Source: Rhodosorus marinus CCMP1338 | Lineage: Eukaryota > Plantae > Rhodophyta | DNA length: 64,000 nucleotides | Direction of reading: 5' to 3' | NCBI GenBank assembly: GCA_029953675.1 | Contig: JAMWBK010000001.1 | Location: forward strand, 2,418,001 to 2,482,000 | Shown here: positions 5,512 through 64,000 of the stretch, in pieces | Numbering within the stretch: position 1 is the first letter of the stretch | Layout of the letters: every line of letters starts with the position of its first letter | Translations under genes and position numbers: made by a program | Notes under the pieces: generated by a model | Told to the model about the DNA's origin: nothing | Seen by the model: the letters and a program-made list of their open reading frames with translations, nothing else | The model's database searches: none

Positions 5512-5721
5512 GAATGCTGACGCCGCGAGTAGCGTCAAACTATTCGAGCACGTGTTTCATCTTACTGATTGCGAAGGAGCATTGAATTTTTGTTGTACTT
5601 GCTTTGTAATTGTTCTTTCCCTGACCCAGAACCCCGTTTTTCTATTCACTATCTCGGAATAAACCAAACGTCTTCGGCTATTCGAGCTGCCTATATACGC
5701 ACTACACCTACGCTAATTTCC

Positions 5722-6060: not shown

Positions 6061-6184
6061 TTGCTACCTCCGACTACTCGTGTTCATTCTCCGTCCAAAT
6101 CTAGCCACGATGTCGTAAGCCTAAGTTGGCACTCAGGCAAGCAAGCTTCATCGTATTAGAGCCATCTTATACTGAATGATCTTA

Positions 6185-6808
6185 TAGTAGTGCCGGCTCC
6201 CGGATGAGACTCGAAGGTGGTAATGTGCTTTGGACCGTCCGCGATTGTATGTGGTACCCGTCAGGGTGGAGGCCCACAAGCCTTTGGGGCCCAGTAACCC
6301 TTCGGAGGCGGATTCCCCCCGCAGTCGTGAGTAAGTAGTGCCGGAAATGGCTAGTCAGACATGGTGATCAGCGGGAAGAAGCGGGTGCTCCCCGGGGCTA
6401 CAGCCCCCCTGACCAACATTCCGACAGAAAGCCTGAGAGGACAACCCACGGAAGGAGCTAGATACGCGACAGGGCAGTAGGCTCGAGGCATCTCTGCCGG
6501 TTTCCTCAGCACAAAATGAGAAAAGTGTGCAAGCAGCGGTGGTCGCGGGCCTCGGCGTGCTTCGGCGCTAGCTCATCGCCTGGTACCTATGGTCATTGAC
6601 TGCTTTGGGTGGATTCCGCTGGTTTTCGTTGGCTTCGGGAGTTGTCCCGCGAACGAGCTGACCGCCTCTCCTCTTTGTTTACCAGGTTAGGTTTCTTACT
6701 GTCACGTATTAAAGCTGCTTTGAGGTTGGAGGCGAACGATCTTCGCCGCGCATAGTCTTTTTCCCTCGGGGTTTTTCTTTCAGTCCCCGATTAAACAAAT
6801 TCATTCAA
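6185..6808 (+). mobile_element. Composite: ~370-nt GC-rich hairpin-rich leader fused to a family A 3' end (candidate non-autonomous element)
   Basis: 6555-6808 matches the family A 3' end. 6185-6550 has no match elsewhere in the window and contains several stem-loops. Confidence 0.55.
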
Positions 6809-6890: not shown

Positions 6891-7262
6891 AACGAACGAA
6901 TGGTTTAATCGGAGGCTGAAAAAAAAAACCCCGAGGGGAAAAAAAGACTAAGCGCGGCGAAGTACTCGCGCCTCCAACATCAAAGCGGCATTCATGCGCC
7001 ACAGCAGGAAACTTAAGCGGGTAAACAACGATTGAAGACGGTCAGGGCGTTCGCGGAACAACTCCCGAAGCCAGCGAGAACCAACAGAGTCCATGAACCC
7101 AAAGCACTCAATGATCAGGAGTACCAAGCGATGTGCTAGTGCCGAAGCACGGACACCAGGGGAAGACAAAGCCCCCGCGTATTTGATCTCTTTGCGGCGT
7201 CTCATGCTGGCGGCGGCAGATCCACGGCGCTCCCCCGCAGCCGGGAGATAACGACTAGCTTG
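6891..7262 (-). mobile_element. Family A 5'-truncated 3' end (young, near-identical to the long copy)
   Basis: Almost identical to 51640-52005. Encodes ASRYLPAAGERRGSAAASMRRRKEIKY...LEARVLRRA. Confidence 0.95.
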
Positions 7263-7299
7263 ACAAAGGGTAGTATGGACGTTGTTAATCACATCCAAC

Positions 7300-17400: not shown

Positions 17401-18224
17401 AAATTTCACTTACTCCGCGAGTAGATGTAGACTATTTGGTACCTGGTACCTGTGGCGACATCACTATGAACGTTTCGGTTGAGGACGGGGGAGAGAACGT
17501 CTTGGTCTCGCTCCGCGACGGCAGCGGAGCCGTCCTTTGTAGTACAAGGAAACTGGACTCTGGCGAGGATCAAAAGCTTGCATGCAGCCTGGAGGGAGTG
17601 AAGGAATTTTCTATCAGAACCAACGGGAATGGAGGGCTTGCCGAGTTATCTAACGCCGAAATCGAATGTGCCGAAGGTTCCAGGGCACCGGTCTGCGTTT
17701 TCGAGGATATGCCGAATACGTTTAGAATTGGTGACGTTTTGAACTACAGTGCGGCATGTTTCGACTATACCGGACAAAGCATTTCGTTAAATAGGCTGAG
17801 ATGGCGAGTGCTACTGATACATTGCCAGCCGTTCTGTCACGAGCATGTGCAGGAAGATCGGTCGGGGATACGGCAGGGCTCGTATACGCCTCCGGATCAC
17901 GGCGACTACTATTTTATGGTGTTTCAGACGCTTGTTCAAGATGGGGATGAAGTGCTTCGATTCAGTCGAGAGGTGAAGCCGGAAACTGTAGAGGTTACAG
18001 TAACAACAAAGCCATCAGGAATGACGGTTGGAGTCGATTCACTGCAAGGACCTGCCCCACTCACATCTCTGGTGCTTGTGGGGGCCAAGTTCACAATCAA
18101 CGCTGTTCCCGAGGAAAATGGCAACGAGTTCGACTTTTGGGATGACAACAAAAGTTTAGGTGAAAACAGGGAGCTCTCGTTCAATACTGCTGGAAAGCGA
18201 ACATACAACGCTGTATACAAGTAG
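14460..18224 (+). CDS. Paralog of 1777-5511: secreted GSDH + Ig-like + NPCBM modular protein; intronless
   Basis: Colinear with the first copy along its whole length (HNNGGLAMDP, GVRNPFR, LIHCQPFCHEH, C-terminal RTYNAVYK). Start placed at the ATG at 14460; the ORF is open from 14340. Confidence 0.85.
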   Translation: MARSGCPYGCSCCKGRYVITALTLAVVAVTLAEAVVIDRDEIIHELVVEGDFRTPVDFDWIPGDVERVLICEKRGIIHLVTDGQVQSKPFLDIQDQLVSVGARGLMSCLVDSKFEEHPYIYVSYVDSRAQTTRYHSPKTGILSRFRVSADYSEATDEVIILGSDTIITQGCRGDVAIGRKDIICNDYSEHNNGGLAMDPETGNIFAAFGDAASPTVFDELPIRALQLDFTAGKILCIKRSGMACENNPFSKNGDRESNRAKVWNWGVRNPFRISWDEVFKVPLIANVGLASWESIFLGSKGENFGWPCREGQQINLRATDYSECKDIEKGTLDASGVSLWDYDHDFGTSVTGVARLSSSEWPTALRNLIAVCDYTRSWIKLIEVTGSGIRGSPMDLLSEVQGPVQLKQGPDGWLYYLSIVAQKLYRVRYEVDTSRPEVVSVFPPEDAENVETSAAIDVRFSKRIRASTANSENIKITQRSNNVVTEATVEIKPATNTVAVKPVEGLLKNHRYEVTVAGVEDTQGRKLQGIFASEFTTGTGFSAYVSDLEFLKEENGGSFPVLRDEHQYQKAQDFTPPLSLRGRVHEKGLGVQAYSEVEVDVPGGCTRFQSDAGIDDFRRIFESGEMFFEVLKDGERVYRNEIFVTKTSPALHIDVDVSGAKTVTLIAEKKLFSSSNGALGTWGSAIFRCGGYDMISPTIESVYPTTRIRVDQSIVVKFGEPMDLISTIDATEVYEPIGLGGYDLGISVTFNEQQNEMTVTPLDSLKYDAQYLLRIKNTAMDLASNRLTSTYERNFLTKILKPDGLTIALEELQPQNVSPSSNFEVSDGVGSSGIQEFDNGIALIAWSAIEIDLPSECERITFTAGKEGTRSDGKILTLKAFAPTTIGGRPKLFFSEDFADDSVAVAADFALPNFTLLRFSALVDDGISHGNFVNVEVTCGEEKISVSDLTVGSQKGRKASLNERLSGKPLTLKVLGTGSSKISLTPRVDVDYLVPGTCGDITMNVSVEDGGENVLVSLRDGSGAVLCSTRKLDSGEDQKLACSLEGVKEFSIRTNGNGGLAELSNAEIECAEGSRAPVCVFEDMPNTFRIGDVLNYSAACFDYTGQSISLNRLRWRVLLIHCQPFCHEHVQEDRSGIRQGSYTPPDHGDYYFMVFQTLVQDGDEVLRFSREVKPETVEVTVTTKPSGMTVGVDSLQGPAPLTSLVLVGAKFTINAVPEENGNEFDFWDDNKSLGENRELSFNTAGKRTYNAVYK

Positions 18225-19271
18225 AATCGCGGATGCTGAATTTAAACGTCAAAAGGCCTCCCGAACTTTTTTTGGAGAGGCAATGCCATTCCCGTATTGC
18301 ACGGCAGGAATCCAGCGATGATTGAGGTTCCCCCTCCCCCTCCCCCCCCTCCCCCATGGGTTGTGGTCGCCACTTCCTTCGTGCATCACATATTTTCCTA
18401 GCTTGCACTATACGTACAAGACCAAAAGAATAGTAGCGCTTACATTCGACAGGTACAAAACTACCCCTAAGAGGCAGGCGTTGATCAACCGCATCACAAA
18501 TAGCTTGCAGCTCATAGACCTACGCCTCGGCGCTGAACTTCCGGCAACAACATCCGGAATGGATGCTAGAGTGAACACCCAGAGTCCTACACGAAATCGA
18601 AAGCCTGCGGACAGTCACCGCAGCCACAATTTTCAGTCTCTCCTCGAAGCAAACACAGCGGTATGCTGCTACTCAAGCTGCTTATTTGTGACTGTTGGTC
18701 ATCTTCGTCAATGAAAGTCTAGAGCAAAGGCTGAGCCCCGCTGGCCAGCTCCAGCTTTGCGCAAAAGGCCGTGTCAGCAAAACCCCCGCGCAACCGTAAG
18801 CTCACTCCAACTCTCATCAATATGATTGGTCTATGGCAAACAAAAACACGTGCCATATCATCATTCGCTAAAATGAAGTGGTGAACTCTTTCCGAATTAC
18901 ATGTAATTACATATGATTTTGCATTTCATGCTTTTTTTAGAAGATTAATTGATGCTATTGGTTTTTCTAGTTGATGTCAATTAACGGTTTGCGTTGGTGT
19001 TAAGAAAGGTGAATATCTATTGAAATATCTGCAAAATTGGGAAATATCTGACATGATGAGGATGGTGGTGGGTTGAGATGATCCCCCAAAGTGTGGGGAG
19101 GTAGAAAAGGGCCAGCTATTTGAGAACTGGTTATACTTGGGTGGAGCTAGGTTGGAGGTAAGATGTGAGCGGAAGCCAATGGAAGAGAAGGAGCCGTTTG
19201 TTGGATTTTTTGTCTATCGATTTCCTACAGTTTGGGAGTTCTGTAAGTGACTTTATTTCGTTGGTGGAACG

Positions 19272-20249
19272 ATGGGGAGCGAGAAGATGAGAGCGTTTAT
19301 GTGCTATCAATATGGATCACCTGCAGATCTTGTTCTTGAAGAGGTTGAAAGACCCGTTCCAAAAGCAAATGAGGTTCTTGCAAAGGCTGAATCGATATCA
19401 TTGAATGCTGGTGATTGGCATGTGATTCGTGGAGATCCTTTTGTGGTGAAGCTGATGTTTGGTTTGAACAAGCCGCGTGATCCAATCCTGGGGTTTGACT
19501 TTGCTGGAAGAGTCGTTGCGGTCGGAAGCGATGTGAAGAATTTTAAGGCTGGTGATGAGGTATTCGGAGATATGAACCTTGGAGCCTTCGCGGAGTATGC
19601 CTGTAAGCCCGAAACACAGTTTGTGAGGAAGCCTTCTTCGATGTCCTTTGAGCAAGCAGCCACGCTACCAACAGCCGGGGGAACTGCACTCATTGCTGCG
19701 AGAGACTTGACGCATGTAACTGCCGGACAAAAAGTATTAGTCATCGGGGCGTGTGGTGGCGTCGGTTCATTTTGCATACAGATTGTGAAGTCAATGGGAT
19801 CTCATGTGACCGCCGTGTGCAGCACTTCAAACGTCGACATGGCGAAAGAACTCGGGGCCGATGAGGTCTTTGACTACAAGAAAGAGGATATATGTAAATC
19901 TGGAAGAGTATTCGATGTCATTCTGGATAATGGCCTGTTCAGATCAATGCTAGACTATCGCCAGATAATGAATCCTGCAGGTAGTACATACCTATTGATC
20001 GGAGGGTCTACGAACCGTTTCTTCCCAGCCATGGCGATGTCACCGTTTGTATCGATGTTTAATAAGAAGAAGATGAAGATTTGTACGGCGGAGCCGGGGC
20101 CGGCGCTCCTAAAAGATCTCGTGGAGTTGTTCGAAGCTGGAAAGGTGAAACCTGCAATAAAAAGGCGGTACAAATTTGAGCAACTTCCAGAGGGGTTGAT
20201 ATACCTAGAAGAAGGACACACGGTTGGTAAAGTCGTTGTGAACGTGTGA
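19272..20249 (+). CDS. MDR-family NAD(P)-dependent oxidoreductase (zinc-independent, quinone-reductase/RTN4IP1-like, bacterial type); intronless
   Basis: YGSPADLVLEEVERPVP, SLNAGDW, GFDFAGRV..VG, GAFAEY, VLVIGACGGVGSF, GKVVVNV. Confidence 0.9.
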   Translation: MGSEKMRAFMCYQYGSPADLVLEEVERPVPKANEVLAKAESISLNAGDWHVIRGDPFVVKLMFGLNKPRDPILGFDFAGRVVAVGSDVKNFKAGDEVFGDMNLGAFAEYACKPETQFVRKPSSMSFEQAATLPTAGGTALIAARDLTHVTAGQKVLVIGACGGVGSFCIQIVKSMGSHVTAVCSTSNVDMAKELGADEVFDYKKEDICKSGRVFDVILDNGLFRSMLDYRQIMNPAGSTYLLIGGSTNRFFPAMAMSPFVSMFNKKKMKICTAEPGPALLKDLVELFEAGKVKPAIKRRYKFEQLPEGLIYLEEGHTVGKVVVNV

Positions 20250-22082: not shown

Positions 22083-22110
22083 AAATACGTGAAGTTCCTG
22101 CAATGTTGTC

Positions 22111-22433
22111 GCCAGTATGAGACGCCGCAAAGAGATCAAATACGCGGGGGCTTTGTCTTCCCCTGGTGTTCGTGCTTCGGCACTAGCACATCGCTTGGTA
22201 CCCCCGATCATTGAGTGCTTTGGGTTCATGGACTCTGTTGGTTCTCGCTGGCTTCGGGAGTTGTTCCGCGAACGCCGTGACCGTCTTCAATCGTTGTTTA
22301 CCCGCTTAAGTTTCCTGCCGCGGCGCATGAATGCCGCTTTGATGTTGGAGGCGCGAGTTCTTCGCCGCACTTAGTCCTTTTTTTCCTCGGGGGTTTTTCT
22401 TTCAGCCTCCGATTAAACCATTCGTTATTCGTT
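22111..22433 (+). mobile_element. Family A 5'-truncated 3' end (young)
   Basis: MRRRKEIKYAGALSSPG...LEARVLRRT plus the 3' UTR ending aaaccattcgttattcgtt. Confidence 0.95.
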
Positions 22434-23853: not shown

Positions 23854-25692
23854 GCATGGGAACTTCACACCTCTATAGTTTTTATAAGCTTTTTCAAGGA
23901 TAATCCTTAAGCACGGGAGTGACGCCTCCTTGGCTAACCATCCAACGTCCAACACGGCCTTTACCTCGACAGAAAGGAATACATGCTAACCATGCTTCCT
24001 TGTTCTTGGTCAGCAGCACTGCTTCTGCTAGAGAGGCGGCCCACCACCCCATGGCTTACACAGGAGAACTTCAGACAGCCCTCCGCTCGCGCAGTGCCAA
24101 AAAACACTCAACTCTGTGCTGCTTTCTTTCTTTGATTCCGCGAAAGCTGTGGAGCGGTGTAAGCTCAAAAATTTACTAAGCGACGGCGCCCTCAATCTCT
24201 CTATTAGATACCATTCAATGGAACATGCAACCTTTAAAGGGGGGATGAGGAATACACAACGGACACTCCAAACCCCCGCTAATTACACGCAAAATATTTA
24301 TTCCTAATTCTCGAATCGAATTGAACCCCGCCCTCATAGTTTCACATTTTCTTAGCAGAGAAGGAAGGGGGAGAAAGTCCTCAGTCCAGGGACCGTTGAG
24401 ATAGTGTTTTCGGAGCGGGCAAAGGGAATTGATCTACCAAGATATGCCAGCTTGCCTGCCTGTCATTCAAATCACCTGAAAACTAGGCCTTGGGTGCAAG
24501 GATTACAAACCGCTTGTGTATTTTACATTCAAATTAATTTCTGGTTTATGATTTTTGTGGGGAACTCCGTCGTAAACTGGCTTTACTAGCATTGCCCTAC
24601 CCCTCCACCCACCCCCCAAAAAAGAGTCAAATGCTTCTTATCATACTACTACTAAATCCGTCAACTCGTGAACTGGAAGAAGACGATTTTATTACGACAA
24701 ATCAAAACCATGGAAGCAAGAATTGCCAATAGAATTCGAGGGTGGAAACCGCCATTGGCGATTGTTTTAGCTCGAAATCAAGGATCGCCGGGGGGGGAGG
24801 GGGCCGGGATACTACTGTGCTACTGGGGAGTGAACTGCGCCATGGGACGTGGTGAATACTATTGGGAGTGGGTGGGGATGATGGTTGTGGGGTTAGCGAA
24901 ACAAGCACCAATTGGTAGCAAGCAGCCGGTGACGTATAGAACAGGAGCAAGATAGAAGGATGAGCACGGACGGTTTACCCTGGGGTTCCCCCCCGACACC
25001 TGACCTGTCCAAAAACAAAAAGCACGATTCCCCGTGTGATGAACGTCACTTGCTTTTTTACTGTTCCTCTTCATGGATATCAAGAGAGGATGTTCAAATA
25101 GGTAATTCCCTGCGGGGTTTTTGGGCGGAATTGTATTATTTTTTTGAGCATGAAGAGCTGGAAGGTCACAGCCGATTAGCGGCATATCAAATTCAAAAGA
25201 CTGTGTCCCCTAGATTCCTTCCTCCAGTGTCACAGCACCCTTTCGTTTGTTTTCGAACGGAGAAATGAGGGGGCTTTCGCGCAAGGTTTCAGGTGCAACT
25301 CAGCCTGTGCTGTAGAGAAGATGGTTTGGGCATAGGGCACTGTGGTCCCCTCCAGCATGTTGAAGAAGCTCCGTCGCATGGCCTCCGAATTGCGAATCAA
25401 CTCCAAGACTCCTGACCAGGCTTTGCGCATATCTGTAACGACAAAAAATTTTCTCTATTGATAGAGCGTTTGGCTCTAAGATTTGCCAAAGACTTTGGTT
25501 GGGGTCAGATTCGTTGTTCCGAAAGCGCGTCCACTGCTGCTTTGGACACTGGCATCACAAAAGCGCCTCATCACCGAAGGCATACATAAATGGTATGAGC
25601 CCGCTGAGATACGGGTGTGACCGGGAGATGGGGCATAGTATCTTACGATCATGAGTGTCGGGTTAAGAAGAAGCTTTACGAATTTGAGCAAA

Positions 25693-26667
25693 ATGGCGAA
25701 GAAAATGCAGGCGTATCACTATTACAAGTATGGAGGCCCTGAGGAGATGATCCTGAAGGAGGTTGACATGCCCGTACCAATGGACAAGGAGGTCTTGGTG
25801 AAAGTCGAGGCTGCGTCGTTCAATGCAATGGACTGGCGACTTCTGCGAGGAGATCCGTGGTTGGTTAGACTGGCAATGGGCTTGCGCAAGCCCGCGAAAC
25901 CACAGCTGGGCTCGGACCTTGCGGGAACAGTGGTTGCCGTTGGAAAAAAGGTGACACAGTTCAAGGTCGATGACCATGTCTTTGGGACTGCGCGCCTTGG
26001 TGCTTTCGCAGAGTACGCTTGTACGCCCGAGGACAGGCTTATCATCAAGCCTAAATCTACTTCCTTCGAGGAGGCGGCGGCTCTTCCAATAGCGTGTGGA
26101 ACAGCTATTAAGGCCGCCGTCGACTACGCTAACATCCAACCAGGCGAGAAGGTGCTCGTTATTGGAGCTTGCGGTGGCGTGGGTTCATTCTGCATGCAGC
26201 TGGCAAAGTCTCTTGGAGCTCACGTCACGGCAGTATGCAGAACAGCAAACGTTGATATGGCAAAGTCGTTGGGAGCAGATGAAGTGTTCGATTACACAAA
26301 AGAAGACGTCTGCAAATCAGGAAAGGTGTTTGATTCGGTGCTGGACAACGGCCTCTTTCGGTCCATGTTCGACTACAAGGCCGTCATGAACCCAGAAGGA
26401 AGTACTTACTTGCTCATAGGCGGTTCTGGAGACAAGTTCGTCCCGGCGTTGTTTCAGGCTCCACTCGTCTCAATGTTCAGCAAGATGAAGTTCAGGATTG
26501 TCAACTTCGAGCTCACCCAAACTGAGCTTCAGAGGTGTCTCGGATCAGTAGAGAGCGGTAAGGTCAAGCCGGCGATCTGCAAGAGGTACAAGTTCAACGA
26601 AATCCCCGCCGCCATGGCCTATGCCGAGAAGGGCCACGTGCAGGGCAAGGTCGTTGTAAATATGTGA
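25693..26667 (+). CDS. Second MDR-family NAD(P)-dependent oxidoreductase paralog; intronless
   Basis: YGGPEEMILKEV, SFNAMDW, GSDLAGTV, GAFAEY, VLVIGACGGVGSF, GKVVVNM. Colinear with 19272-20249. Confidence 0.9.
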   Translation: MAKKMQAYHYYKYGGPEEMILKEVDMPVPMDKEVLVKVEAASFNAMDWRLLRGDPWLVRLAMGLRKPAKPQLGSDLAGTVVAVGKKVTQFKVDDHVFGTARLGAFAEYACTPEDRLIIKPKSTSFEEAAALPIACGTAIKAAVDYANIQPGEKVLVIGACGGVGSFCMQLAKSLGAHVTAVCRTANVDMAKSLGADEVFDYTKEDVCKSGKVFDSVLDNGLFRSMFDYKAVMNPEGSTYLLIGGSGDKFVPALFQAPLVSMFSKMKFRIVNFELTQTELQRCLGSVESGKVKPAICKRYKFNEIPAAMAYAEKGHVQGKVVVNM

Positions 26668-32227: not shown

Positions 32228-32935
32228 AACTTGAACTCACGTCTTGCTTGCGCCAACTTGTGAAAACCTGGCCACGGTTCATGCTCTTTTACAGCATCGA
32301 CATGACGGCAGTTCCGCCCGGGGTTTCGGAGATGAGGGATCGCGGGTGACGCGAAAGCTTGGAACAAGCGGAGAAACGATCACTGTTTCGTAGAAATGGG
32401 GACCTCCAGTTGCTCCCGAAGGGGTGACTGACATTCGATGCTTTAGGAAGAAGCTTACTGAAGGGTCCTTCCCGACTTCCACAGCGGATACGCAAGAATC
32501 GCCGCAAAGAGCGCTGGGGTGCACAATTCCGTCTGAACGTATAATTATCGGGATTGATATTTAATCATTATGTCTATATTGATCGTTTTCAATCAATGAT
32601 ACCGAAAAGACTAGAAAGTTATCTGTATTGGTATGTTAGCGTTAGTTTGGCTTGTACTTGTCCGTATATGGGTCAGTAGGTTAAAGCTCGAAGAGCTCCT
32701 GTACACAGGACGATCAAAAGGGTCCTCGGTGGGGATTGATTAAGCCCTCATCTGTCTCCGACGGCTTGGGCTGTCGGCAGCATCGAACACAGACTGTGGA
32801 TGGGATCTGACGCCCTGGAGCACATTCGTAGGATTTGGGTCTCGGGGAAGCGCTCCCGGACCCCAGACAAACGTAACCCTAGCCACAGTCCATTTTTCAG
32901 GTCCACACTGATCCACTCAGTCACTAAGTGGTTGG

Positions 32936-47555: not shown

Positions 47556-48017
47556 ATGGCTATGTTCCATGAAAGCTCTTACAGAGCTATAGAGACGCAT
47601 GGAGGCGCATCATAACCTTTGAGCAAGTTTTAGCCAGACCGTTAGTCTATATACCCTTTTATCTTCCTTACTTCAGCTACCCAGACTAATCGAGGGGAAT
47701 CCAAAGTTTGGGGTGCTTGTCGCGGCTTCTTACGGGCTCTGGTGTCGTCTGTTGGAGACGGTTCCGCATCTTGGTCAACTTCCATATCGCTGGGAGACTC
47801 CAAACCTTGTTGAGGAGGTTCCTGAAGGTAGCAGGGGAGCTCATCGTGCGGGTTCTCGTCTCCTCCGTCAGGGTTAGTTGATACCTCATGTTGGGTTGGC
47901 AGAAAAGGCTGCGGGGTTACGTTATTCTGGAGTCCGGGGTAGCCTGGGATACGTGATAGTATTGGATACGGTTCGGAAAGTTTGTAGTTTTGGTTAGTTT
48001 GGGGTAAACCATGATAA

Positions 48018-49300
48018 AGGCTGGCGATTCCCCCCGGACTGGGGAGGGGGAAGTCGAAGAGTGCCGGTGCACCTAGGGGAGAGACGCATCTCTCTGCAGC
48101 TGATAATGGAGAGGAGGGGCACATCGCAGAAAACGGTGTGCCGCGCGCCTCTGTTGCCCACCAAGGAGAAGATGAAGGCGCAGAGATGGCGCCAACGCCC
48201 ACCTCTCCCACCACTGCGAAAGAAGATGCTGTTCATGCACTCTTGGGGAAGCTTTCAACGTATACAGAGTTCTACTGCAATTCTGGGGTATCAGAGGGAG
48301 AGCTCGAACGTTTCTTTGCGGGGTTCTACAACGTGTACTCCCGGGCAGCCAACACCGACGATCTCAAGGGCATCAACGCCCGACTCGAAGCTCTGGGTGA
48401 ACATCCCACCTGGTGGTCTTCAGGACCAGCCCCGTGCCTGCCGGCCGAGATACCCAATCAGTTTGCTCATCTCCACACCATGAGATCTAACTTGGGACAG
48501 TCCCACGCGGAACAGTCAGCTATGGGACAACCCGACTTGGGACAATCGACTTCCGGGACACCGGTGGGACAGCCTGTGGGACAGGAGGACCCGGAATTCC
48601 CACCACTGGGACAGTCACAGCTGCCACCTAGGGGTACATATGCACAACGGCCAGCTAAAGCCGCAGGTATGCGCCAGCAGACGGTTCTCCAACAAGATAC
48701 TGCGCTGCGCCAACTGCATGCGACTGTAGGAGGTTGTAGATGGGGCCCGGAAACCCATCCGGTATTGGCAACCCTGCGGAATGCTAGGCCGCCTCGCACG
48801 GAGCAGGTGGCGCTATCAGACTACAAGAAGGTCCTATGGCTCTGGGACTCCCGGCACACTTGATAGCGCACATTGATTTTGTTGCCACATCCGCGCTGCT
48901 CATCTGCCACCCGGATGCCAGCCCACTCATAAGTAGTGCCATCGCGAGGGGAGTTTTTCGCACCGGAGTGTTCGCATCGTTCGCACAGCGCCGTCACGAC
49001 CACCAAGTGACGGTGCACACGAGTCTCGAGCCCGAACCCCGGAACCTGCTCGGGTACAACGAGAGACTCGGTCTGCGCCCGGAAGCAGTCGCACCACGGA
49101 CCCTCGCCCGCGCTATTGAACAGGTGGAACGAATCAAGCGCACGATGAATCTGCGGGTTCTCCCGTTCCCGACGTCCGCCTCGATACATGCGTATCTGGA
49201 CGCGCGACTGGAATCTCTTGGCACACACCACAGCTCGGTGGCAAGACAGGGTGATCCCGGGACCCTCCCTGTGAAACCACCTTTAGTATTTCCAAGTGCA
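48018..49300 (+). pseudogene. Retroelement-associated ORF1-like protein with one frameshift near 48835
   Basis: ORFs 48138-48863 and 48836-49393 join through a 1-nt shift (YKKVL / MALGLPAHLIAHIDF). Homologous to the ORFs at 61950-62660 and 63707-64000. Confidence 0.55.
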
Positions 49301-49320
49301 AGACCGATAAGCGTTTATCA

Positions 49321-49860
49321 TTTATCGGATGGAGATAGCAATCCGATGCAAAAGCGTCCAAAAACCTGTAATCATCATCCGGAACTACTGTGAGCTGGTC
49401 CGAAACGAAGCGATAAACGTTTATCAAACTGTCCGATGTTTATTTACGGAACCCAATCGGACTTTCCTTTATCGCATGGAGATAACAATCCGATGCAAGC
49501 TTCGAAAAACCTATGATCATCATCTGGAACTACTGTGAGTTGGTTTGGGAAAGAAAGGAACTAGCTACTAGATTTCTGTCCGTCCAGTGCGGACATTCTC
49601 TTATCGCACGGAAATGACAATCCTATGCAAGCGTACAAAAAACGCATAGTCAGCATGATCCCCAACCACTAAGAAGTGGTTTGGAAGAGAAGGGAATTTG
49701 GATACTAGATTCTTGTTCGTCGAATGCGAGGGTTCTTTTATCGGACGGGAATGACGACCTTATGCTGAGCGTACAAAAACCCGTGCTCAGTGTGATCCAC
49801 TGAGATTTGGATTGGAAGAGAAGGGAATTTACATACTAAATTTTTGTCCTACTAATGTGC
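49321..49860. repeat. Four degenerate tandem units of ~132-147 bp
   Basis: ttatcg(g/c)a(t/c)gg..a..a..cc.atgc recurs near 49321, 49468, 49600 and 49738. Confidence 0.75.
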
Positions 49861-49873
49861 GCGTAAAATATTT

Positions 49874-51307
49874 ATGTACACCCAACAACTGAATCACGCT
49901 GGAAATTTTGAGGGTGTGAGTAAAAGAGACTGGGGAACGCTCTTGGATGAGCCCCTCGATCTTGAAGCTGCTCCCGACAGGGACTTAATTCATGCACAGA
50001 TCGCTCTACCGTTGCGATTAGGGGGATTCGGCGTCGCAGACCGTGGGCTGGTATGCTCGCCAGCGGCGGTTGCCTCCTGGGCTACCGCGCTGCGAACGTT
50101 GGTGACCTTCCAGATGCGAAGTGCCTGCCTCTTGGCTCGAGCTTTGACCAACGAGGATCCAGTGACCCTGCCGCCCCCGCTTTTGACAATTTATGATGGT
50201 CTTCAACACGCGTTCAGGAGGTGCAACGCCGTGCCGGACGCAAATCGGTCCCGCTTTCGTTCCTGGAGGGAGCTGTTATGGGGACGAGCTGAAGCGATTG
50301 AGGATTGTCCCCTCGACCGAGTTCTTGCCGATGACGGAGAGGCTAGCCCCGGGTCCCCTGTTGCAGACTACCCGGGTTTGAGCCGATTGTGGAGCTCCCG
50401 CACTGATGTGATTCAACATAGCCTCACCTGGGGCCAACACAGTGCCGCTCACACAGTCATGCTCAATTCTCCACTCACGCCGCCTACCACTGCCGCTCGT
50501 CTCCGCGGCATGTGAGGCCACCTCTTGCACTTGTGGTTAACCACTCTACCGTCGTCATTGAGTCATCGTCTCGATGCTTTCCAGTTCCGTTCTGCCGCAC
50601 GGATCTATCTCGGTTTGCCACAGGCTCCGTGGCACTCTAATCGGCCGTCTTTCTGTCAGGGATGTGAGAGCCGGATTGACGCTTGTGGCTACCACTTCCT
50701 GGGTTCCTGCGGACTGTTGCGAGGTCTCCGTACGAGGCGTCACACTCGTCTCAAGTACATCCTCAGCGAATTTTTGACTCGGATAGGGCATACGGTTGAG
50801 GTTGAGTCGGAACTGCCCAGATCCATCTCGGACTCTGCACCGCCCCGTTGTATAGCCGATCTCCTCGTCTCCGACGCTGCTGCCAGACGCTCAACATATG
50901 TGGACCTTGCGATTACCTGCCCCGTGGCCAGCGCCCACCTCACCGCAGCCGCCCGCCGCCGGGGGGCCGCGGCTTCAGCCCTTCGAAGAGTTAAGGAACG
51001 ACGGTATGCTGAGAGCATGGCCAGTCTGCCTTGCGCTGAGGGTCGCTCTCACCGGTTCCAGCCATTCATTGTGGAAAGCTTTGGTCACGTGGATAAGTCG
51101 GGTTTAGAGTGGTTGCGGAAATGTTTTGCTGAGCATCCTACTGAATATTTGGCGCTCTTGAGGCGTTTAAGTGTCTCCCTTTGGCGATATTCCAGCGACA
51201 TGCTTTCCGAGGCGCGCCATCGGCACCTGGGGTTGCATGCTTCCCTCCCTAGTTATTAGTTCATCTTCACGCCTTGCGTAGCGCTTCAGGCTATGCTAGT
51301 AAAGTCC
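49874..51307 (+). mobile_element. Family B RLE retrotransposon: post-RT region, zinc knuckle and RLE domain, with one in-frame TGA (50513-50515)
   Basis: AQIALPLRLGGFG; CQGC..DACGYHFLGSC; RTRRH; ADLLV; YVDL; VKERRY; PFIVESFG. The two ORFs share a reading frame. Confidence 0.9.
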
Positions 51308-51639
51308 AGTAAAAGAGAGATTCCAAATGCTGACTGTCAACAAAACTGTGCAAAGAGCACTGAGGGTTACAATGAAGAACCATCAAGCTGCATGGAGTTA
51401 GCAGTTACGAACCAATTCATCTACGCGCCAGTTCGGCTATGTCAAGGACATCGAAAAGAACCTCTTTTGCTTTCCAATTGTCACTGTGTCCCCCTCAGAA
51501 ACCCGTTGGTTAGAGTCTGGAGCGTTTGGGCAGCATGGAGGATGCAGTCGCTCAAATTGTTGAAATACTGGAATTTCCAGATCTGGAGTTCATATGCTTA
51601 ATTTTTATAAAAGTTTCGACACTACCTAGACTTAGTAGA

Positions 51640-54094
51640 ACGAATGGTTTAATCGGAGGCTGAAAAAAAAAACCCCGAGGGGAAAAAAAGACTAAGCGCG
51701 GAGAAGTACTCGCGCCTCCAACATCAAAGCGGCATTCATGCGCCACAGCAGGAAACTTAAGCGGGTAATCAACGATTGAAGACGGTCAGGGCGTTCGCGG
51801 AACAACTCCCGAAGCCAGCGAGAACCAACAGAGTCCATGAACCCAAAGCACTCAATGATCAGGGGTACCAAGCGATGTGCTAGTGCCGAAGCACGAACAC
51901 CAGGGGAAGACAAAGCCCCCGCGTATTTGATCTCTTTGCGGCGTCTCATGCTGGCGGCGGCAGATCCACGGCGCTCCCCCGCAGCCGGGAGATAACGACT
52001 AGCTTGAGGGTTAGGAACAGCAAGATCAACGTATGTGGTACGGCGGCTGTCGTCACAGGTGATCACCAGGTCGGCTACACGGCGTTCATCATTTTGAAAG
52101 TCCGCGACGGGTAAAGGTTTCTCACGTTCGATTTCCAGACCGGCTTGCCGGACTATAGGCCGAAGTTCCCGGTATAACAGGTTCAAGATCCGTGTATGGC
52201 GGCGGGTTCGAGCACCTTTCACCGCCGGGCAACTAGCGAGCAGGTGGGCGCCAAAATCTGCGTTGTCTTCAGTCTGAGAGCAGAGAGGGCACGACGAACC
52301 CATCTCGTACGGCCAAGGGGGCTGATGTAAGCCGAGGTATAAGCGCAGTGAAGTACGCACTTCGAAATCCGACAGTGTGAGTGGCGGAAAGGCTGGTACG
52401 GTCATGAGCCACTGAGAGCTAATAACCCCTCCAAGACTACGTAGGCGGGCGCGAGCGCGGGAAGATGAGACCATCTGCGCGAGGAGTCGGCCATATGCGG
52501 CACGGTGCAAGTCCCAAGAAAGGATATTTTGCAGCGCATCCGTGCGTGCTTGAGCTCGGCTCCCAGCGCGCTGGGAATCATCAGGAGGATCAACTGGAAC
52601 TTCTTCTTCTGCGGCAACCACTGGGTCAATCTCCCCTAGAACAGGTTCAGGCGCAGGACGAATCCCCGGGGCGGAGCCTCGAGAGCGGTCAAATACAGCT
52701 CGCCAGTCAGGAAGACGGGGTTGAACGGTTTCGGGGAGACTAGTACAGGAATTCAGGGCGGTTTGGAGCTCCAGAAACAAGTCTTGGGCGCTTTCCGGTA
52801 CGCTGGGAAGCAAGACACCCCGCGAGAGGCTCGCCATCAAATTGCGGAACTTCGAGATACCCAAGCTGCTCAAAGTGGGAAGTGCGGTTCCCCAGGCCCC
52901 TACTGCGGCTGCAGGTTGGACCACAACACGATTGCAGAGGCCCAGTCCCCCCAATCGCAATGGGAGGCCTACCTGGGCGCGCACAACATCACAGGTGGGT
53001 CGTGGCAGAGCGCTCAGCTCTTCATCGAGAAAATACCCCAGGTCACGGAAACTTTCAGCATCCGCACGAGTGGCCAACCACTGGCCCCAATGAGTTGGAA
53101 GTGAGCGAAGCCAATAGGTTAACCCCTGACTGCAACAATACCGAAACAGCAACAACGCGCACTGGAGAAAGCCCGGAGGGAGCCGTCGAAGCTCTGCAAC
53201 CAGCTGTCTGTGCTTACCGAGGAGCTGCAGCAACTCGCCTTCAACGAAGGACAGCGACCCGTAGGGGATGCCTAAGTGGACAAAACCATCCGGTCTCCAA
53301 ATATCCTGGAACGACGCAGGTACCTGCTGCTCTTGTGCAGCTACACCTCCCCAGTAGAACGATTTGTGATGATTAACCTCCAAGTCAACCCGCGAAGCTA
53401 AGGAGCGGAGACGATCATAAGCGAGCGCTAGAGTATCAGGGGGCCCCAGGAGGCACACGTCGTCGTGGTATGCAACCGTACGAACCTGCGGGAATTCGGA
53501 GCGAAGACAAAGCAAGACGAGTTGTAGTCCACAGGCATGTAGGAAAGGGGACAAGGGATCACCCTGTTGTACCCCTGTGCGCGCCGCAAACGTGTGTGAG
53601 GAAGCGCCAAGGGTGTCATAGGTAGCCCCACGACCAAGCGGAGAATAAAGTCTACTAACAAAGGGAAAGCCTACAGGGAAGACTTCGCGCACCACGTGCA
53701 TGAGAGCCGGACGAGAGACGCGGTTGAACGCATTGGTAAAATCTACAGAGAGGAGCCCAGAATCTGGGGAGTACGCCATTTCCGAACGGAGTAAAACAGA
53801 CAACAACTCACAGCCACCACGATAGCCCACGCCTAACTGCACGTGCCCAAAGAAACGGCGGGATTCGGGAACCAGGATTTTCACTAACCATCGCGCCGCC
53901 AATTTGCGGACCACCTCAACCAGGCCAATAGGGCGAATAGCAGGGCTCGAGGCCGTGTGGCCGGGCTTCGAAAGCAGACACAACTGCGAACGCCCGACCA
54001 AGAACCACACACACTCACACAGGGGATCACCATTCACAAGCGCTTCGACCACCCACGCCAACGCCTTCAAACCTTCATCACTTAAGAAACGAAC
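51640..54094 (-). mobile_element. Family A CRE/MoTeR-like non-LTR retrotransposon, 5'-truncated, with RT + CCHC + RLE intact over 792 aa
   Basis: RT motifs LLSKPG..IRPIGLVEVVRKL, QLGVG, VDFTNAFNRVSR, GVQQGDPLSP, AYHDD, LGIPYG, LPLRLGGLG. Knuckle CPLC..GAHLLASC. RLE RRH..VADLV..YVDL..KEIKY..IIECFG. Confidence 0.95.
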
Positions 54095-57700: not shown

Positions 57701-58026
57701 CTTTACTAGCATAGCCTGAAGCGCTACGCAAGGCGTGAAGATGAACTAATAACTAGGGAGGGAAGCATGCAACCCCAGGCGCCGATGGCGCGCCTCGGAA
57801 AGCATGTCGCTGGAATATCGCCAAAGGGAGACACTTAAACGCCTCAAGAGCGCCAAATATTCAGTAGGATGCTCAGCAAAACATTTCCGCAACCACTGGA
57901 TTGACTGGATGGATGGATTTACTAGAATAGCCTGAAGAGCACCGCACGGCGCGAAAGGGAACTAGAAACTAGGGTTACGTTAGCCTGGGGTCTAGCGTGC
58001 AAACCCAGGGGGCGATGGCGCGCCAG
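57701..58026 (-). mobile_element. Two head-to-tail family B 3' ends (57701-57897 young; 57910-58026 older)
   Basis: 57701-57897 differs from 51109-51305 at one visible position. It is flanked by ggattgactgga at 57689-57700 and 57898-57909. Confidence 0.95.
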
Positions 58027-60713: not shown

Positions 60714-61214
60714 CAAGGTTTCATTCCACGCGTATCCTTTACCCGTCGCGGACTTTCAAAATGATGAACGCCGTGTAGCCGACCTGGTGATCACCTGTGA
60801 CGACAGCCGCCGTACCACATACGTTGATCTTGTTGTTCCTAACCCTCAAGCTAGTCGTTATCTCCCGGCTGCGGGGGAGCGCCGTGGATCTGCCGCCGCC
60901 AGCATGAGACGCCGCAAAGAGATCAAATACGCGGGGGCTTTGTCTTCCCCTGGTGTTCGTGCTTCGGCACTAGCACATCGCTTGGTACCCCTGATCATTG
61001 AGTGCTTTGGGTTCATGGACTCTGTTGGTTCTCGCTGGCTTCGGGAGTTGTTCCGCGAACGCCCTGACCGTCTTCAATCGTTGTTTACCCGCTTAAGTTT
61101 CCTGCTGTGGCGCATGAATGCCGCTTTGATTTTGGAGGCGCGAGTACTTCGCCGCGCTTAGTCTTTTTCTCCCCTCGGGGTTTTTTTTTCAGCCTCCGAT
61201 TAAACCATTCGTTC
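60714..61214 (+). mobile_element. Family A young insertion with a 10-bp TSD and a 23-nt inverted flank copy at its 5' end
   Basis: TSD gcttatagag at 60704-60713 and 61215-61224. Family A sequence begins at ~60737; ORF 60787-61161. Confidence 0.95.
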
Positions 61215-61312: not shown

Positions 61313-61629
61313 CATTTCTCCAACCAGCGAAGTTATATTTGTTTTTAAATAAATAAGATCTCCAAAAATAGATTTCGTAACCGTTCTGGCGCACGAGATT
61401 TATGTGCACTGACATAGAACAGAGAAAAAAAAAAATCTCGTCCGGGCGAATTGCAACCGAAGGTTTCCACAACTGTTAAGCTATTAATAGCAAAAGCCCC
61501 GTCGTTGGCTAGTTTTGAGTGTTTCGGGTTGATAGATTCCCTTCGTTCTCATTGGCTTTCGGAGTGACGCCGCGAACCGCCTGACAGCATTTGCCGGAAG
61601 TCTTGGGTTGCCCTTGAAAAGGATTTACG

Positions 61630-62660
61630 CTGTGGTTTGGGGTGGGTTTTGGCTCATTTTTGGGTCAGAAATTGTTTGCTCGTGAGAGGCGCTGCCTCCC
61701 GTACTCTTCTTCCCGCTTTGTTCCTGGTGCGTGGGTGGTTTGTGCGCCTTCTCTCCTCCCGCGGGGTGGTGGCGGAGTGGTCTAGGTCTTCTGTGCGGGA
61801 TATACGGGTCAATTCGCGGGGCTTTTGTGGTGAAACTGTGAGAAACAGTTTCACCACAAAAGGTTGAATTTCTCCGCCCGTTGTGGAGGCTGGCGCGGCC
61901 GGCACGCTCGTTGAATTGCGCGTGGGCGCATTCAGCACCAGGACCACTCTTACGCACTGCGACGAAGCATCGTCGCACGAACTGTTCGCGAAACTGACCA
62001 GCCTTCTTGTCGTTTCTTTCCGGGAGCACCGTCCGCCCCTGTTGTAGACGTATTTGGGGAACTTCCAGTCTAACGCCGGTGCCTGCGTCCACTCCCTTGC
62101 CGATACTCCGGCGGGGAGCTCTGTCCCGCGCCTTTCTGCTGCTCGCGCGGAACATGCCGCCCCGACAATTCCTGATCCCACTGTGCCTCCCCTGGATGTT
62201 GGCCAACCCGCCCATGGTCCGTCTTTGGAGCCGAATCCTGCGCCTACAGGTTTCTCGATTCTCCCTCCCCTCGGATTCCCAGGTCCTTCGGTTTCCAGGT
62301 CCTTCGGCGTGATTCCTCTGAACAACGCACGACGGCCATACTGCGCGTGATGACCTCTCCTGTGACCACTCCTGCGTCCTCTCGCCAGTTTTCGCCGATT
62401 GCTCTCGCCTGGATGACGAACGTGCGCTCGCAGACCCCTCCCGATGTCTGGGCCGCACTCTCGTGCACAACCGTGATTTCCGTGGGACCATAGCTTCCTC
62501 ACTTGGAGTCCCTCCATCAGAGTTCCTTTTCGTGGATTTCACTGGGCCTCATGTCTGGTTTCTCGTCACCAAGAATGCCTATCAATTCTTTACCTCGCTT
62601 CTCGCCACTCGTCAGCCTCAGCGCTCTGCCCTCGCGAACATGATCCCAACTCGCCTGGGG
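61630..62660 (+). mobile_element. 5' part of a retroelement with decayed ORF1 homolog, truncated at the G-rich motif
   Basis: CVHSLADTP and DFRGTIASSLGVPPSEFLFVDF align by eye with CLYQLADSP (near 63950) and DYKKVL-ALGLPAHLIAHIDF (near 48830). Confidence 0.55.
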
Positions 62661-62676
62661 TTACTTTAGTCTGGGG

Positions 62677-63330
62677 TACGTCTGCATCACTGCCGAACGT
62701 CGTCAGGTATGCGAACAAAGCGACATGATGCAATAAAAATGGAGCTGAACCGATGGATACACCTTTGGAATTTTACGGACCTATAAGTGGAGCCGCAAGG
62801 GTTCTTTTCTGGGTCAGGTATTCGGCCAGATATTGTAGCAAGGCATCCGACGAGCGGGCATGTGTACGTGGTGGACGTAATGGTGACGTCGCCGCTTCAA
62901 CGTCATCAACGAGACAAACGAGCTGGAGAAACGGATATGCAGCGGCGAAAGGGGAGCAAAGCAAAGTAGCGCACTACCATGAGGTAATACGCGCTGAAGG
63001 CAGGGAGGTGATACTCGTACCATTCATTGTTGAGACGTACGGAAGGCTGTGACAGGCAGGACTAGAGTTTCTGCGAAAGGCCACTGCTCATCTTCATGAT
63101 CGTGGAACACACCTAACATCGGTGAGGGATCAACTAAATCGGATTCTGTGGCAGCGTAATGCTGCGCTAGTTGAGCACACGATCGAGAAAGATCGCGCGG
63201 GTAGAGCAACATTTCCCTTGAGTAGAACTTAGATGAGAGCCCTGGACAGGGGGTCCAAGTGAGTTTAGGTCGAATACATAGTAGTGGTATTGCGCTGCGG
63301 TAGGTAGCTGCCGAATAAAGGCTACGGGGT
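62677..63330 (+). mobile_element. Family D RLE retrotransposon, 5'-truncated and decayed
   Basis: LHHC..GMRTKRHDAI, IRPDIV..VVDVMVTSP, PFIVETYGRL, ILWQRNAALV, with stops and a frameshift. 3' end near gaataaag. Confidence 0.85.
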
Positions 63331-63334
63331 TAGC

Positions 63335-63423
63335 TTACGGTTACGTTAGTCTGGGGTGTAGCACTAGTATACGCTGCAGTAGGCAGCTGCCCAGTAAAGT
63401 TTACGGTTACGTTAGTCTGGGGT
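63335..63423 (+). repeat. Two exact copies of ttacggttacgttagtctggggt (63335-63357, 63401-63423)
   Basis: Read directly. Each follows a similar gctgc.gtagg.agctgcc..taaag segment. Confidence 0.95.
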
Positions 63424-63451
63424 TGTCTGGAGTTTTTGGGAGGCGTTTCTG

Positions 63452-64000
63452 GTGATTTTCGCTGCGCTAGGTGTCTCGTGTTGCTTTTTAGAGGCAGTGA
63501 CACTCCTGGGCCACCGCGCTTCGTACCTTGGCGAGCTTTCGGTTAAGCTCTGTGGTTGGCGTGGAGCGAAGTTGGAATTCGGAAACCAGAAGAATATGAT
63601 AGTGCGGGAGGTGCGGGGGCCGTACCCAGAGCCAATTCTCATCCCCGGTTCACCGGCACCGGGTCCCGTGGAAGTGTTACATGCACTGCAGCACCGCGCT
63701 GTGTGAGCAGAGCAGCAACCAAGGACATCGACACCAGCAGAAGACGTTACGCAGGCGGGAAGCAGGAATGAGACTGATGCCACTAATGGTCCAGCCGCCT
63801 CTTTCATGCAACAGCTGCGCACCTGTGACCAGTTTTGTCATGGTGTGGGCATTGGGGAAGCAGCCGTCCAGGAGTTCTACAAGGCGATCTTTAAGTTGTA
63901 CTCCCGCATTGGGAGCACCAACGACCTCACTGGCGTCACTCGATGCCTCTACCAGCTAGCAGACTCACCCCAGACGTGGACTTGGGGCCAGGGAAGCGAG
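63452..64000 (+). CDS. ORF1-like protein running off the window end (in-frame TGA at 63704-63706)
   Basis: Open from 63707: FMQQLRTCDQFCHGVGIGEAAVQEFYKAIFKLYSRIGSTNDLTGVTRCLYQLADSPQTW, which aligns with LLGKLSTYTEFYCNSGVSEGELERFFAGFYNVYSRAANTDDLKGINARLEALGEHPTWW at 48.2-48.4 kb. Confidence 0.6.

Follow-up and report, generated by a model that had tools for sequence, protein, structure and literature searches.

Several groups of retrotransposons without long terminal repeats (non-LTR elements) are found at chromosome ends. GilM/GilT of Giardia, Zepp of Chlorella and HeT-A/TART of Drosophila are piled head-to-tail there, and the Drosophila elements replace the telomerase repeats entirely, the 5' end of each attached element being the distal one. 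In Bombyx mori, SART1 and TRAS1 insert into the telomere repeat with nucleotide precision by target-primed reverse transcription; they carry an N-terminal endonuclease of the apurinic/apyrimidinic endonuclease (APE) type and poly(A) tails, and a G-strand-sense orientation is possible for SART1. The repeats themselves can be long, with 8-26 nt in budding yeasts and 12 nt in Allium. In the MoTeR elements of Magnaporthe oryzae, the 5' end always lies nearest the chromosome tip and the sense sequence is on the C strand, 5'-truncated copies are capped, and internalised 'relics' keep a partial repeat (PMC7367193). Here, we describe a 64,000-nt stretch of the red alga Rhodosorus marinus CCMP1338 (assembly GCA_029953675.1, contig JAMWBK010000001.1, 3,806,663 bp, positions 2,418,001-2,482,000; hereafter the window), which ends in a head-to-tail array of retroelement pieces punctuated by a 16-mer, TTACGTTAGTCTGGGG. 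We consider it highly probable that this 16-mer is the telomere repeat of R. marinus, that the D-group of CRE-like non-LTR retrotransposons is specific for it, and that the arrays and solo units in the window are interstitial products of the two.

Self-comparison and translated searches separated the elements with reverse transcriptase (RT) and restriction-like endonuclease (RLE) regions into the groups A, B and D. The D-group comprises a family D fragment at 62678-63340 and elements with a separate first open reading frame (ORF1) at 61644, 63424 and 48005; positions above 64000 continue the window numbering into the downstream extension. When the ORF1 of the 63424 element was searched against proteins, it matched two: NDN08_004843, which is annotated in R. 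marinus, and one that comes from an independent Logan assembly. The gene of NDN08_004843 is located ~15 kb from the end of JAMWBK010000007.1 (2.21 Mb; hereafter contig 7), and the contig end was reached from there through the neighbouring gene NDN08_004845. The last 17,054 bases, numbered inward from the contig end, are referred to as L066.

The terminal 466 nt of contig 7 consist of 29 tandem 16-mers (Tandem Repeats Finder: period 16, 29.1 copies, 99% matches). Read inward in L066 the unit is CCCCAGACTAACGTAA; on the + strand of the record, the contig ends in (TTACGTTAGTCTGGGG)n, as checked over the last 120 nt, and the G-rich strand thus runs 5' to 3' toward the contig end, which is the polarity of a telomere. 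A preliminary description of the window had offered the 16-mer either as a long telomere repeat targeted by the elements or as a 3'-terminal motif of family D, and had made the first option depend on tandem arrays at chromosome ends. Such an array is present at the end of contig 7, and RLE elements are interleaved with the repeat in the last 5 kb, which supports the first option.

Inward from the array, one unit and 24 nt of junk (L066 467-506) are followed by a 2.5-kb 5'-truncated D element (507-3043), which consists of an RT reading frame of 556 aa (Pfam RVT_1, 2.7e-13) and an RLE reading frame of 304 aa with one frameshift between them and has a 3' untranslated region (UTR) ending ...CAGTAAAGTGTACGCGG. 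Next come 1.7 units (3044-3071), a 3'-truncated ORF1 fragment whose leader is shared with the 48005 element of the window (3072-3551), CTGGGG with two perfect and two variant units (TTAGTTTGTCTGGGG and TTATCTGGGG; 3552-3614), a second 3'-truncated ORF1 fragment related to the 61644 element (3615-4740), and a B-type fragment (4741-5416) with genes beyond it. In these last 5 kb of contig 7, every D-group piece has its sense sequence on the G strand, and 1-4 repeat units separate the pieces. Furthermore, about 15.7 kb from the contig end a D-type UTR end is followed by one perfect unit and then by an ORF1 element whose truncation point falls halfway along ORF1 (region L064). An independent sequencing run shows a junction of the same kind between repeat and element: in a 1766-bp Logan contig (SRR32518361; L065), CTGGGG TTCGGCAGTTTGGGG TTACGTTAGTCTGGGG T precedes an ORF1 element that is truncated at another point.

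Two side observations concern these sequences. On the Logan contig, the perfect 16-mer adjoins an ORF1 element of 67% identity together with an A-type-like 3' end, and the run offers a second Rhodosorus-like data set for comparison. In L066, two junctions hold an inverted telomere piece, GGGGT|AACCCCAGACT at 3033-3044, where it makes a perfect hairpin together with the unit before it, and, at 467-490, TTACG|CAGACTAACGT|GTACGCGG; both suggest a fold-back or template switch during insertion or repair.

The elements meet the repeat in a fixed register. Nine element 5' ends with differing start points (61644, 62678, 63358, 63424 and 48005 in the window, L064 10362, L065 1068, L066 3043 and 3551) all lie directly after GGGGT (...CTGGGGT). 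Five D-type 3' UTR ends (...TACGG, TACAG or GCGG, namely GCTTACGG, GTTTACGG, GATACAG and, twice, GTACGCGG) all precede TTACGTTAGTCTGGGG, which starts with TTACG. Every element at these junctions is sense on the G strand, and all 13 instances of the 16-mer outside the terminal array (window, contig 7 and L065, leaving out a match at 45794 discussed below) have a T as the next base. Since the register is fixed on both the 5' and the 3' side, the repeat was entered at one position. In addition, the two ORF1 elements of L064 and L065 are cut at different points of ORF1 and each start right after a perfect unit, which makes the repeat the target and not a part of the element. The 16-mer is therefore the insertion target, and the own terminus of D is ...TAC(G/A)G.

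This bears directly on the second option of the preliminary description, according to which the 16-mer would be nothing but the fixed 3' tail of family D, with each tail recreating an insertion site and thereby building head-to-tail arrays, and with an incidental link to chromosome ends. We favoured this self-targeting tail at first: families A and B in the window have non-poly(A) tails of their own, the 16-mer is never tandem there and mostly stands beside D-type 3' UTRs, the window is internal, and the degenerate variants at 61625 and 47989 seem to diverge along with their elements. It was overturned by the 29-unit array with telomere polarity at the very end of contig 7, where tracts of at least 2 units also separate elements. 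Moreover, the D-type UTR keeps a conserved end of its own (...AAAG(N2-3)TAC(G/A)G) ahead of the repeat, the repeat also precedes unrelated ORF1 5' truncation points and caps 3'-truncated ORF1 fragments without any D 3' UTR, and it is 16/16 identical beside ORF1 elements whose proteins share no more than 67-71% identity. Within the window, the reading as a tail fits neither the first ORF1 element, which lacks its 3' part and gives way to 1.4 units at the cut, nor the unit at 57975, which is inserted in one B-type copy. We now regard it as very unlikely.

With the repeat as target, the arrangement can be explained by the following model. The C-terminal RLE would nick the C-rich strand at a constant position within the repeat unit, and the freed CGTAA-3' end would pair with the 3' end of the element RNA (3' UTR ...UACGG) and prime reverse transcription. 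The new copy would have its sense sequence on the G strand and its 3' end facing the chromosome tip; the 5' end of the copy, whether complete or truncated, would be joined after ...CTGGGGT, and the repeat would resume at TTACG past the 3' end. Repeated insertion into the telomere could then build head-to-tail arrays with short internalised repeat tracts between the copies. Terminal erosion would trim the 3' part of the distal element, because the 3' end is the distal side; telomerase would re-cap the end, and new elements could enter the new tract. The sequences show the terminal array with its polarity, the interleaving of elements and repeat tracts, the fixed register of the junctions and the RT and RLE domains; that telomerase makes the repeat, which strand is nicked, that eroded ends are healed and how they become internal is what we infer.

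Junctions of the kind expected from erosion are present at both loci. Four 3'-truncated elements meet the repeat in variable register (62654/62655 in the window, L066 3615/3614 and 3072/3071, and 47691/47690 in the window), and these junctions read ...CGC|CTGGGGTTAC, ...GTAC|CTGGGGTTACG, ...GAGC|TTAGTCTGGGG and ...TCGA|TTAGTCTGGG. Elements that are truncated at the 3' end and capped by the repeat cannot arise from target-primed reverse transcription, but erosion followed by healing can give them, and judged by their junctions these caps look like eroded and healed chromosome ends. At the 5' side, one ORF1 family has, at two loci, the variant-repeat tracts TTAGTTTGTCTGGGG and TTATCTGGGG in front of it, along with a conserved leader whose last bases are ...TGGGG; other ORF1 families begin with TTGTCTGGAG... 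or TGGGTTTTGG..., with few full-length copies among those compared.

Such variant-unit tracts at element 5' ends (TTAGTTTGTCTGGGG, TTATCTGGGG, TTCGGCAGTTTGGGG), together with the resemblance of the D-type UTR ends (TTACGG, TACGG) to the unit start (TTACG), could also be taken to mean that the RT of a retroelement made the terminal array by recopying its own (read-through) RNA 3' end, with no conventional telomerase involved. The array itself argues against this, as 29 units of 99% identity with no element sequence within them have the character of a telomerase product, and capping of eroded elements in variable register through microhomology fits telomerase as well. Ordinary short candidate telomere repeats have furthermore been reported in other red algae (PMC7046594), and we judge an RT-made array to be extremely unlikely. 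There is a slight chance that an unreported 16-nt telomere repeat of R. marinus, perhaps of the Stylonematophyceae, is co-occupied by a dedicated RLE lineage with its 3' end outward and that, in the strongest form of this idea, the repeat is templated by the element 3' end or the telomerase RNA template evolved from it. If this were true, the system would be a surviving link between the upkeep of chromosome ends by retroelements and their upkeep by telomerase.

In the window, TTACGTTAGTCTGGGG has eight matches with up to 3 mismatches, versus 0.48 expected, and none of 100 shuffles reached this number. Six of them are on the + strand, at 47917, 47989, 57975, 62661, 63341 and 63407, and one with a single mismatch is on the - strand at 32861-32876. 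The eighth match, at 45794, has 3 mismatches, lies inside a CLC-channel reading frame, is followed by C and is probably due to chance. No further copies were added by scanning the flanking regions L063 (8.2 kb, upstream) and L002 (5.4 kb, downstream), and within these 77.6 kb the 16-mer is never tandem, the longest tract being ~1.4 units. The near-copies that had been pointed out before were recovered at 47917-47932 and 47989-48004, upstream of the third ORF1, and at 57975-57990. The claim that all near-full copies lie on the + strand holds for the six listed above and fails for the overlooked copy at 32861-32876. The unit at 57975 is indeed G-rich on the + strand while its host is a minus-strand copy of the B-type 3' UTR, and the reversed 10-nt partial near 47681 is the partial unit TTAGTCTGGG at 47681-47690 on the minus strand. 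A known RNA gene (spliced leader, small nuclear, ribosomal or transfer RNA) was also tried as a CRE-type target that would contain the 16-mer; this candidate was rejected, as Rfam at the gathering threshold gave only an unrelated tRNA at 28958.

The array at 61.5-64 kb lies entirely on the + strand, and the order of its pieces is the one given in the preliminary description, which had missed its first repeat unit. It opens with a 5'-truncated fragment of the C-terminal RLE region and 3' UTR of a D-group element ('E-type', 61490-61624, start approximate), whose frame 3 translation SLASFECFGLIDSLRSHWL corresponds to a conserved stretch of the RLE region, PLIIECFGFMDSVGSRWL, and which has a weak blastn match to RLE-coding DNA at 5838-5884. 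Between its 3' end and the 5' end of the next element stands a degenerate telomere unit, TTACGCTGTGGTTTGGGG (61625-61642), plus T (to 61643), which keeps the canonical TTACG...TGGGG|T frame. The next element (61644-62654) is an ORF1-bearing 5' fragment of the D-group, cut on its 3' side inside ORF1; BLASTP gave weak but significant matches to the ORF1 at 63424 (E=4e-6) and to the ORF1 fragment in the contig-7 subtelomere (E=1e-6). This 3'-truncated element is capped by 1.4 telomere units, CTGGGG-TTACTTTAGTCTGGGG-T, at 62655-62677, exactly as quoted before. We read this as a junction of de novo telomere addition (healing); a like junction, ...AAGTAC|CTGGGG TTACG..., is present 3.6 kb from the contig-7 end (L066 3615/3614).

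Immediately after this cap follows the 5'-truncated family D element (62678-63340), in which the RLE domain is frameshifted and the 3' UTR ends in ...AATAAAGGCTACGGGGTTAGCTTACGG. It shares 40-46% amino acid identity with the RLE reading frame of the terminal contig-7 element (tblastn, E=8e-21 and 1e-17), and its segment RPDIVARHP...YVVDVMVTSP aligns to the PD-(D/E)xK block. One perfect telomere unit plus T (63341-63357), an extremely 5'-truncated D-group 3' UTR end of 49 nt (63358-63406, ...GCTGCAGTAGGCAGCTGCCCAGTAAAGTTTACGG) and another perfect unit plus T (63407-63423) follow, and TTACGGTTACGTTAGTCTGGGGT is present, as had been reported, both at 63335-63357 and at 63401-63423. A near-identical UTR end, GCTGCAGTAGGCAGCTGCCCAGTAAAGGATACAG, precedes a telomere unit on contig 7 (L064 10310-10344). 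The last piece (63424-64000) is the 5' end, UTR and ORF1 start, of a D-group element that extends past the window: its ORF1 runs to ~64669, its RT region covers 67564-68595, and a 1385-bp B-type insert is nested within it at 65633-67017. Outside the window the main array continues to ~68.7 kb. The 66-nt D-type UTR piece was also considered as part of the 5' end of the ORF1 element, generated by TART-like read-through; this was ruled out by the 5'-truncated ORF1 copies directly after the repeat in L064 and L065, and only in the 48005-type element do we still count a piece of this sort, the variant-repeat leader, as belonging to the 5' end.

A second array occupies 47.7-49.9 kb. It starts with a minus-strand, 3'-truncated D-group fragment from the linker region between ORF1 and ORF2 (47681-47889), which is capped by the partial unit at 47681-47690 and then joined to unique DNA. 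Its translation ...ENPHDELPCYLQEPPQQ... matches ...DNPHAELPCNLPEPPQQ... of the 63424 element, and the fragment looks like a relic. On the + strand, a short D-variant 3' UTR end, CAGAAAAGGCTGCGGGG, which matches ...CGAATAAAGGCTACGGGG... of D, and a degenerate telomere unit, TTACGTTATTCTGGAG, plus T (together 47890-47933) lead into the 5' end of the third ORF1 element, which begins with a leader of telomere-like repeats in variant form (47934-48004, ...TATTGGATACGGTTCGGAAAGTTTGTAGTTTTGGTTAGTTTGGGG). A leader of this type recurs (77% over 115 nt) before the homologous ORF1 element of contig 7, directly behind perfect telomere units. The third ORF1-bearing D-group fragment itself covers 48005-49928 (tblastn with an ORF1 query: 48243-48991, E=6e-37), and directly after it lies a 1385-bp B-type unit (49929-51313). 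Between the ORF1 fragment and the B-type unit, tandem repeats of ~147 bp (~73% identity) were seen at 49318-49847.

Two units stand alone. The first, TTACGTTAGCCTGGGGTCTA at 57975-57994 on the + strand, lies inside the minus-strand B-type 3' UTR copy, in which it replaces AGGGAA, and has no counterpart in four other copies. The second, GGCTAGGG TTACGTTTGTCTGGGG T at 32860-32885 on the - strand, is telomere-like and lies in unique DNA; a mitochondrial-carrier gene has its stop codon ~60 nt before it. With ~1.4 units each, both insertions resemble telomerase-added repeats at repaired breaks.

These solo units raise the question of whether a chromosome end was ever present at the array. The repeat could be the telomere repeat and yet have been seeded by telomerase, with 1-2 units, at an internal double-strand break, after which D-group elements inserted there repeatedly. 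Two solo seeds of ~1.4 units in non-telomeric DNA, one of them demonstrably inserted relative to four paralogous copies, show what such a start might look like; each insertion regenerates GGGG|TTACG at its 3' end, and the locus is surrounded by ordinary genes, with 1.3 Mb between it and the contig end. What this in-place origin does not account for is the 61644 element, which is cut on its 3' side and whose missing part is absent from the following 6.8 kb. Junctions that were first 3'-truncated and then capped occur also at the genuine end on contig 7, and the partial unit at 47681-47690, joined directly to unique DNA, is a second relic-like junction. The cut in the 61644 element and the junction at 47681-47690 fit the healing of an eroded end and its later internalisation, as described for MoTeR relics (PMC7367193). 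We rate an origin in place as a realistic possibility, though not a probable one.

The genomic setting of the window is internal: the nearer end of its contig is 1.32 Mb away. The array thus repeats the architecture of a chromosome end at an interstitial site and is not part of a subtelomere today. A ZIP-transporter gene is located at 58.4-59.4 kb, ~2 kb upstream of the main array, and from 59.5 kb to beyond 69.4 kb the sequence consists of nested repeats throughout, with no called genes. The nuclear genome and its Nanopore-based assembly are described in PMC10250338; of the 13 large contigs in that paper, 12 are said to carry one or more telomeres, and the telomere sequence is never given. 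The genome is 31 Mb in size, and LINE/CRE accounts for 4036 copies or 9.04% of it in the RepeatMasker table of the same paper. In our literature search, no telomere repeat sequence for R. marinus was found in published papers.

A gene-free repeat region of this length, with copies that are 98-99% identical to others elsewhere, in a Nanopore-based assembly might have been produced by joining subtelomeric or telomeric long reads into contig 1 through shared CRE-like repeats. We regard such an artefact as unlikely, as unique gene-bearing DNA directly adjoins the array on its left side, the repeat tracts of 1-1.4 units contain no long telomere, and three more independent motif sites (32861, 47.7-48.0 kb and 57975) lie in or beside unique genes. 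The arrays at 61.5-64 kb (to ~68.7 kb) and 47.7-49.9 kb and the units at 57975 and 32861 are most likely relics of a healed and internalised end, or short telomerase-added seeds that were later colonised. Taken together, three routes to the internal position come into consideration, namely internalised healed ends, in-place colonisation of telomerase-added seeds and, less likely, an assembly mis-join.

Several points weigh against a telomere repeat with its own dedicated elements. Of ~26 contig ends, one was read. The arrays of the window are internal among ordinary genes, with the ZIP transporter 2 kb upstream, and the 16-mer is never tandem there; the elements are clearly not confined to the chromosome ends of today. 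All D-group copies found are truncated or frameshifted, and the D RLE reading frame alone gave no match against Pfam or the PDB sequences. Telomerase is the presumed maker of the 16-mer array, and a mis-join of long reads at the transposable element cluster of the window keeps a small probability.

The RT and the CCHC-RLE region of the elements are those of RLE-bearing non-LTR retrotransposons (the R2/CRE/NeSL/R4/HERO class); the ORF2 copies observed are all interrupted or 5'-truncated. The RT of the 63424 element is 50% identical to that of the terminal contig-7 D element and ~31% to the A-type RT. In a motif alignment, the RLE regions of A, B and D share C-x2-C...H-x3-4-C followed by (P/A)D...(V/I)D(L/V)xV...KxxKY, which is predicted to be the PD-(D/E)xK nuclease block. 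The A-type example is a reading frame of 792 aa at 51692-54070 on the minus strand (Pfam RVT_1, 5.3e-11), whose best PDB matches are R2 proteins and whose CCHC stretch aligns to R2 residues 944-983. A protein search with this frame revealed no R. marinus paralogues, its relatives being metagenome proteins of 25-35% identity, and an exact-protein look-up gave no record. We call the elements CRE-like following the LINE/CRE label that RepeatMasker gave them in the genome paper.

The A- and B-type elements differ from the D-group in their targets, as eight A-type and six B-type ends have unrelated flanks at scattered sites. A-type elements end in ...CAGCCTCCGATTAAACCATTCGTTC without poly(A); copies ending ...GATTAAACCATTCGTTC are located in both orientations at 485-762, 5722-6061, 6556-6807, 6893-7263, 22110-22426, 51638-54070 and 60736-61214. 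B-type elements end in (TAAAGYCCAG)n. The 1385-bp B-type unit is 99% identical at 49929-51313 and at 65633-67017 (L002 2418-3802), with flanks that differ on both sides; both units start with ACTGGGGAACG, both lie inside D-group ORF1 elements, and they may represent a fixed-length non-autonomous subfamily without RT. Apart from the mobile elements, the window contains a segmental duplication of ~79% nucleotide identity (1780-5515 versus 14505-18227 and 19272-20249 versus 25651-26667), the segments of which carry a gene with GSDH/Big_5/NPCBM domains and paired zinc-type alcohol dehydrogenase genes.

For red algae, AATGGGGGG, TTATT(T)AGGG and TTAGGG have been listed as telomere candidates, with information described as 'mostly missing or fragmentary' (PMC7046594), and tests by the telomeric repeat amplification protocol (TRAP) and by probes were negative in three rhodophyte classes (PMC3622300). 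The 16-nt terminal repeat could serve as a probe, as a TRAP primer and, with a template of at least 17 nt, in the search for a rhodophyte telomerase RNA. Interstitial telomere tracts of Magnaporthe are breakage hot spots. The relic arrays of the window, at 1.3 Mb from a contig end, may be traces of earlier rearrangements of chromosome ends. A metagenome scan for two TTAGTCTGGGG cores 0-12 nt apart revealed no 16-nt tandem. In the same material, the contigs Ga0131853, Ga0123353, Ga0136643 and Ga0123354 end in tandem 19-mers, (GTGTTAGTCTGGGGRCATG)n, with a TTAGTCTGGGG core (arrays in L032 8831-9011, L050 1-165, L045 and L056), and this 19-mer is probably the long telomere repeat of another eukaryote.

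Compared with known systems, the 16-mer resembles the long repeats of yeasts and Allium in that it exceeds the TxAyGz pattern of 5-8-mers and has its G cluster at the 3' end; its TTAG...GGGG core recalls TTAGGG. To our knowledge, a unit of 16 nt is long by any standard outside the budding yeasts, and we know of no case in which GilM/GilT, Zepp or HeT-A/TART enter a telomerase-type repeat of 16 nt in one fixed register. Unlike SART1 and TRAS1, the D-group has a C-terminal RLE and no poly(A). With CRE1/CRE2, SLACS and CZAR the R. marinus elements share the RT-CCHC-RLE architecture, strict site specificity and the LINE/CRE label; those elements target spliced-leader RNA genes, whereas the D-group targets the telomere repeat.

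The published cases of telomere-repeat-specific RLE retrotransposons that we found are fungal (MoTeR, FoTeR and Cnl1). An independent case in Archaeplastida, in the opposite orientation, would mean that this strategy arose or persisted far more widely, and the opposite orientation would offer a natural contrast for how RLE enzymes read their targets. Like the D-group, the FoTeRs of Fusarium oxysporum and Cnl1 of Cryptococcus lie at chromosome ends, encode RT and restriction endonuclease-like (REL) domains and have asymmetric junctions, with telomere motifs on both sides and several canonical repeats following on the 3' side (PMC12857005). FoTeR flanks show the C-rich strand (TAACCC), opposite to the D-group, and FoTeRs are described as confined to chromosome ends, whereas the D-group also forms internal arrays with tracts of up to 1.4 units in the window and is accompanied by solo units.

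The most extensive likeness is to MoTeR1 and MoTeR2 (PMC7367193). Both these and the D-group combine RT with a restriction-enzyme-like endonuclease, insert into the telomere repeat in a single fixed orientation, form head-to-tail arrays with short interstitial telomere tracts between the copies, and have truncated copies capped by de novo telomeres, which in the D-group are putative, as well as internal relics. MoTeR also carries variant telomere-like repeats at its 5' end, a possible counterpart of which stands before one ORF1 family here at two loci. The D-group differs in that its 3' end is distal, its sense sequence is on the G strand and 3'-truncated copies are the ones capped; its target is a 16-nt unit instead of TTAGGG, its host is a red alga, and it has a separate ORF1. 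Judged by sequence, it would work like MoTeR, FoTeR or SART1 and differ from these in orientation, target and host. By analogy, the D-group appears to follow the MoTeR scheme with reversed polarity, and the likeness described here is one of function.

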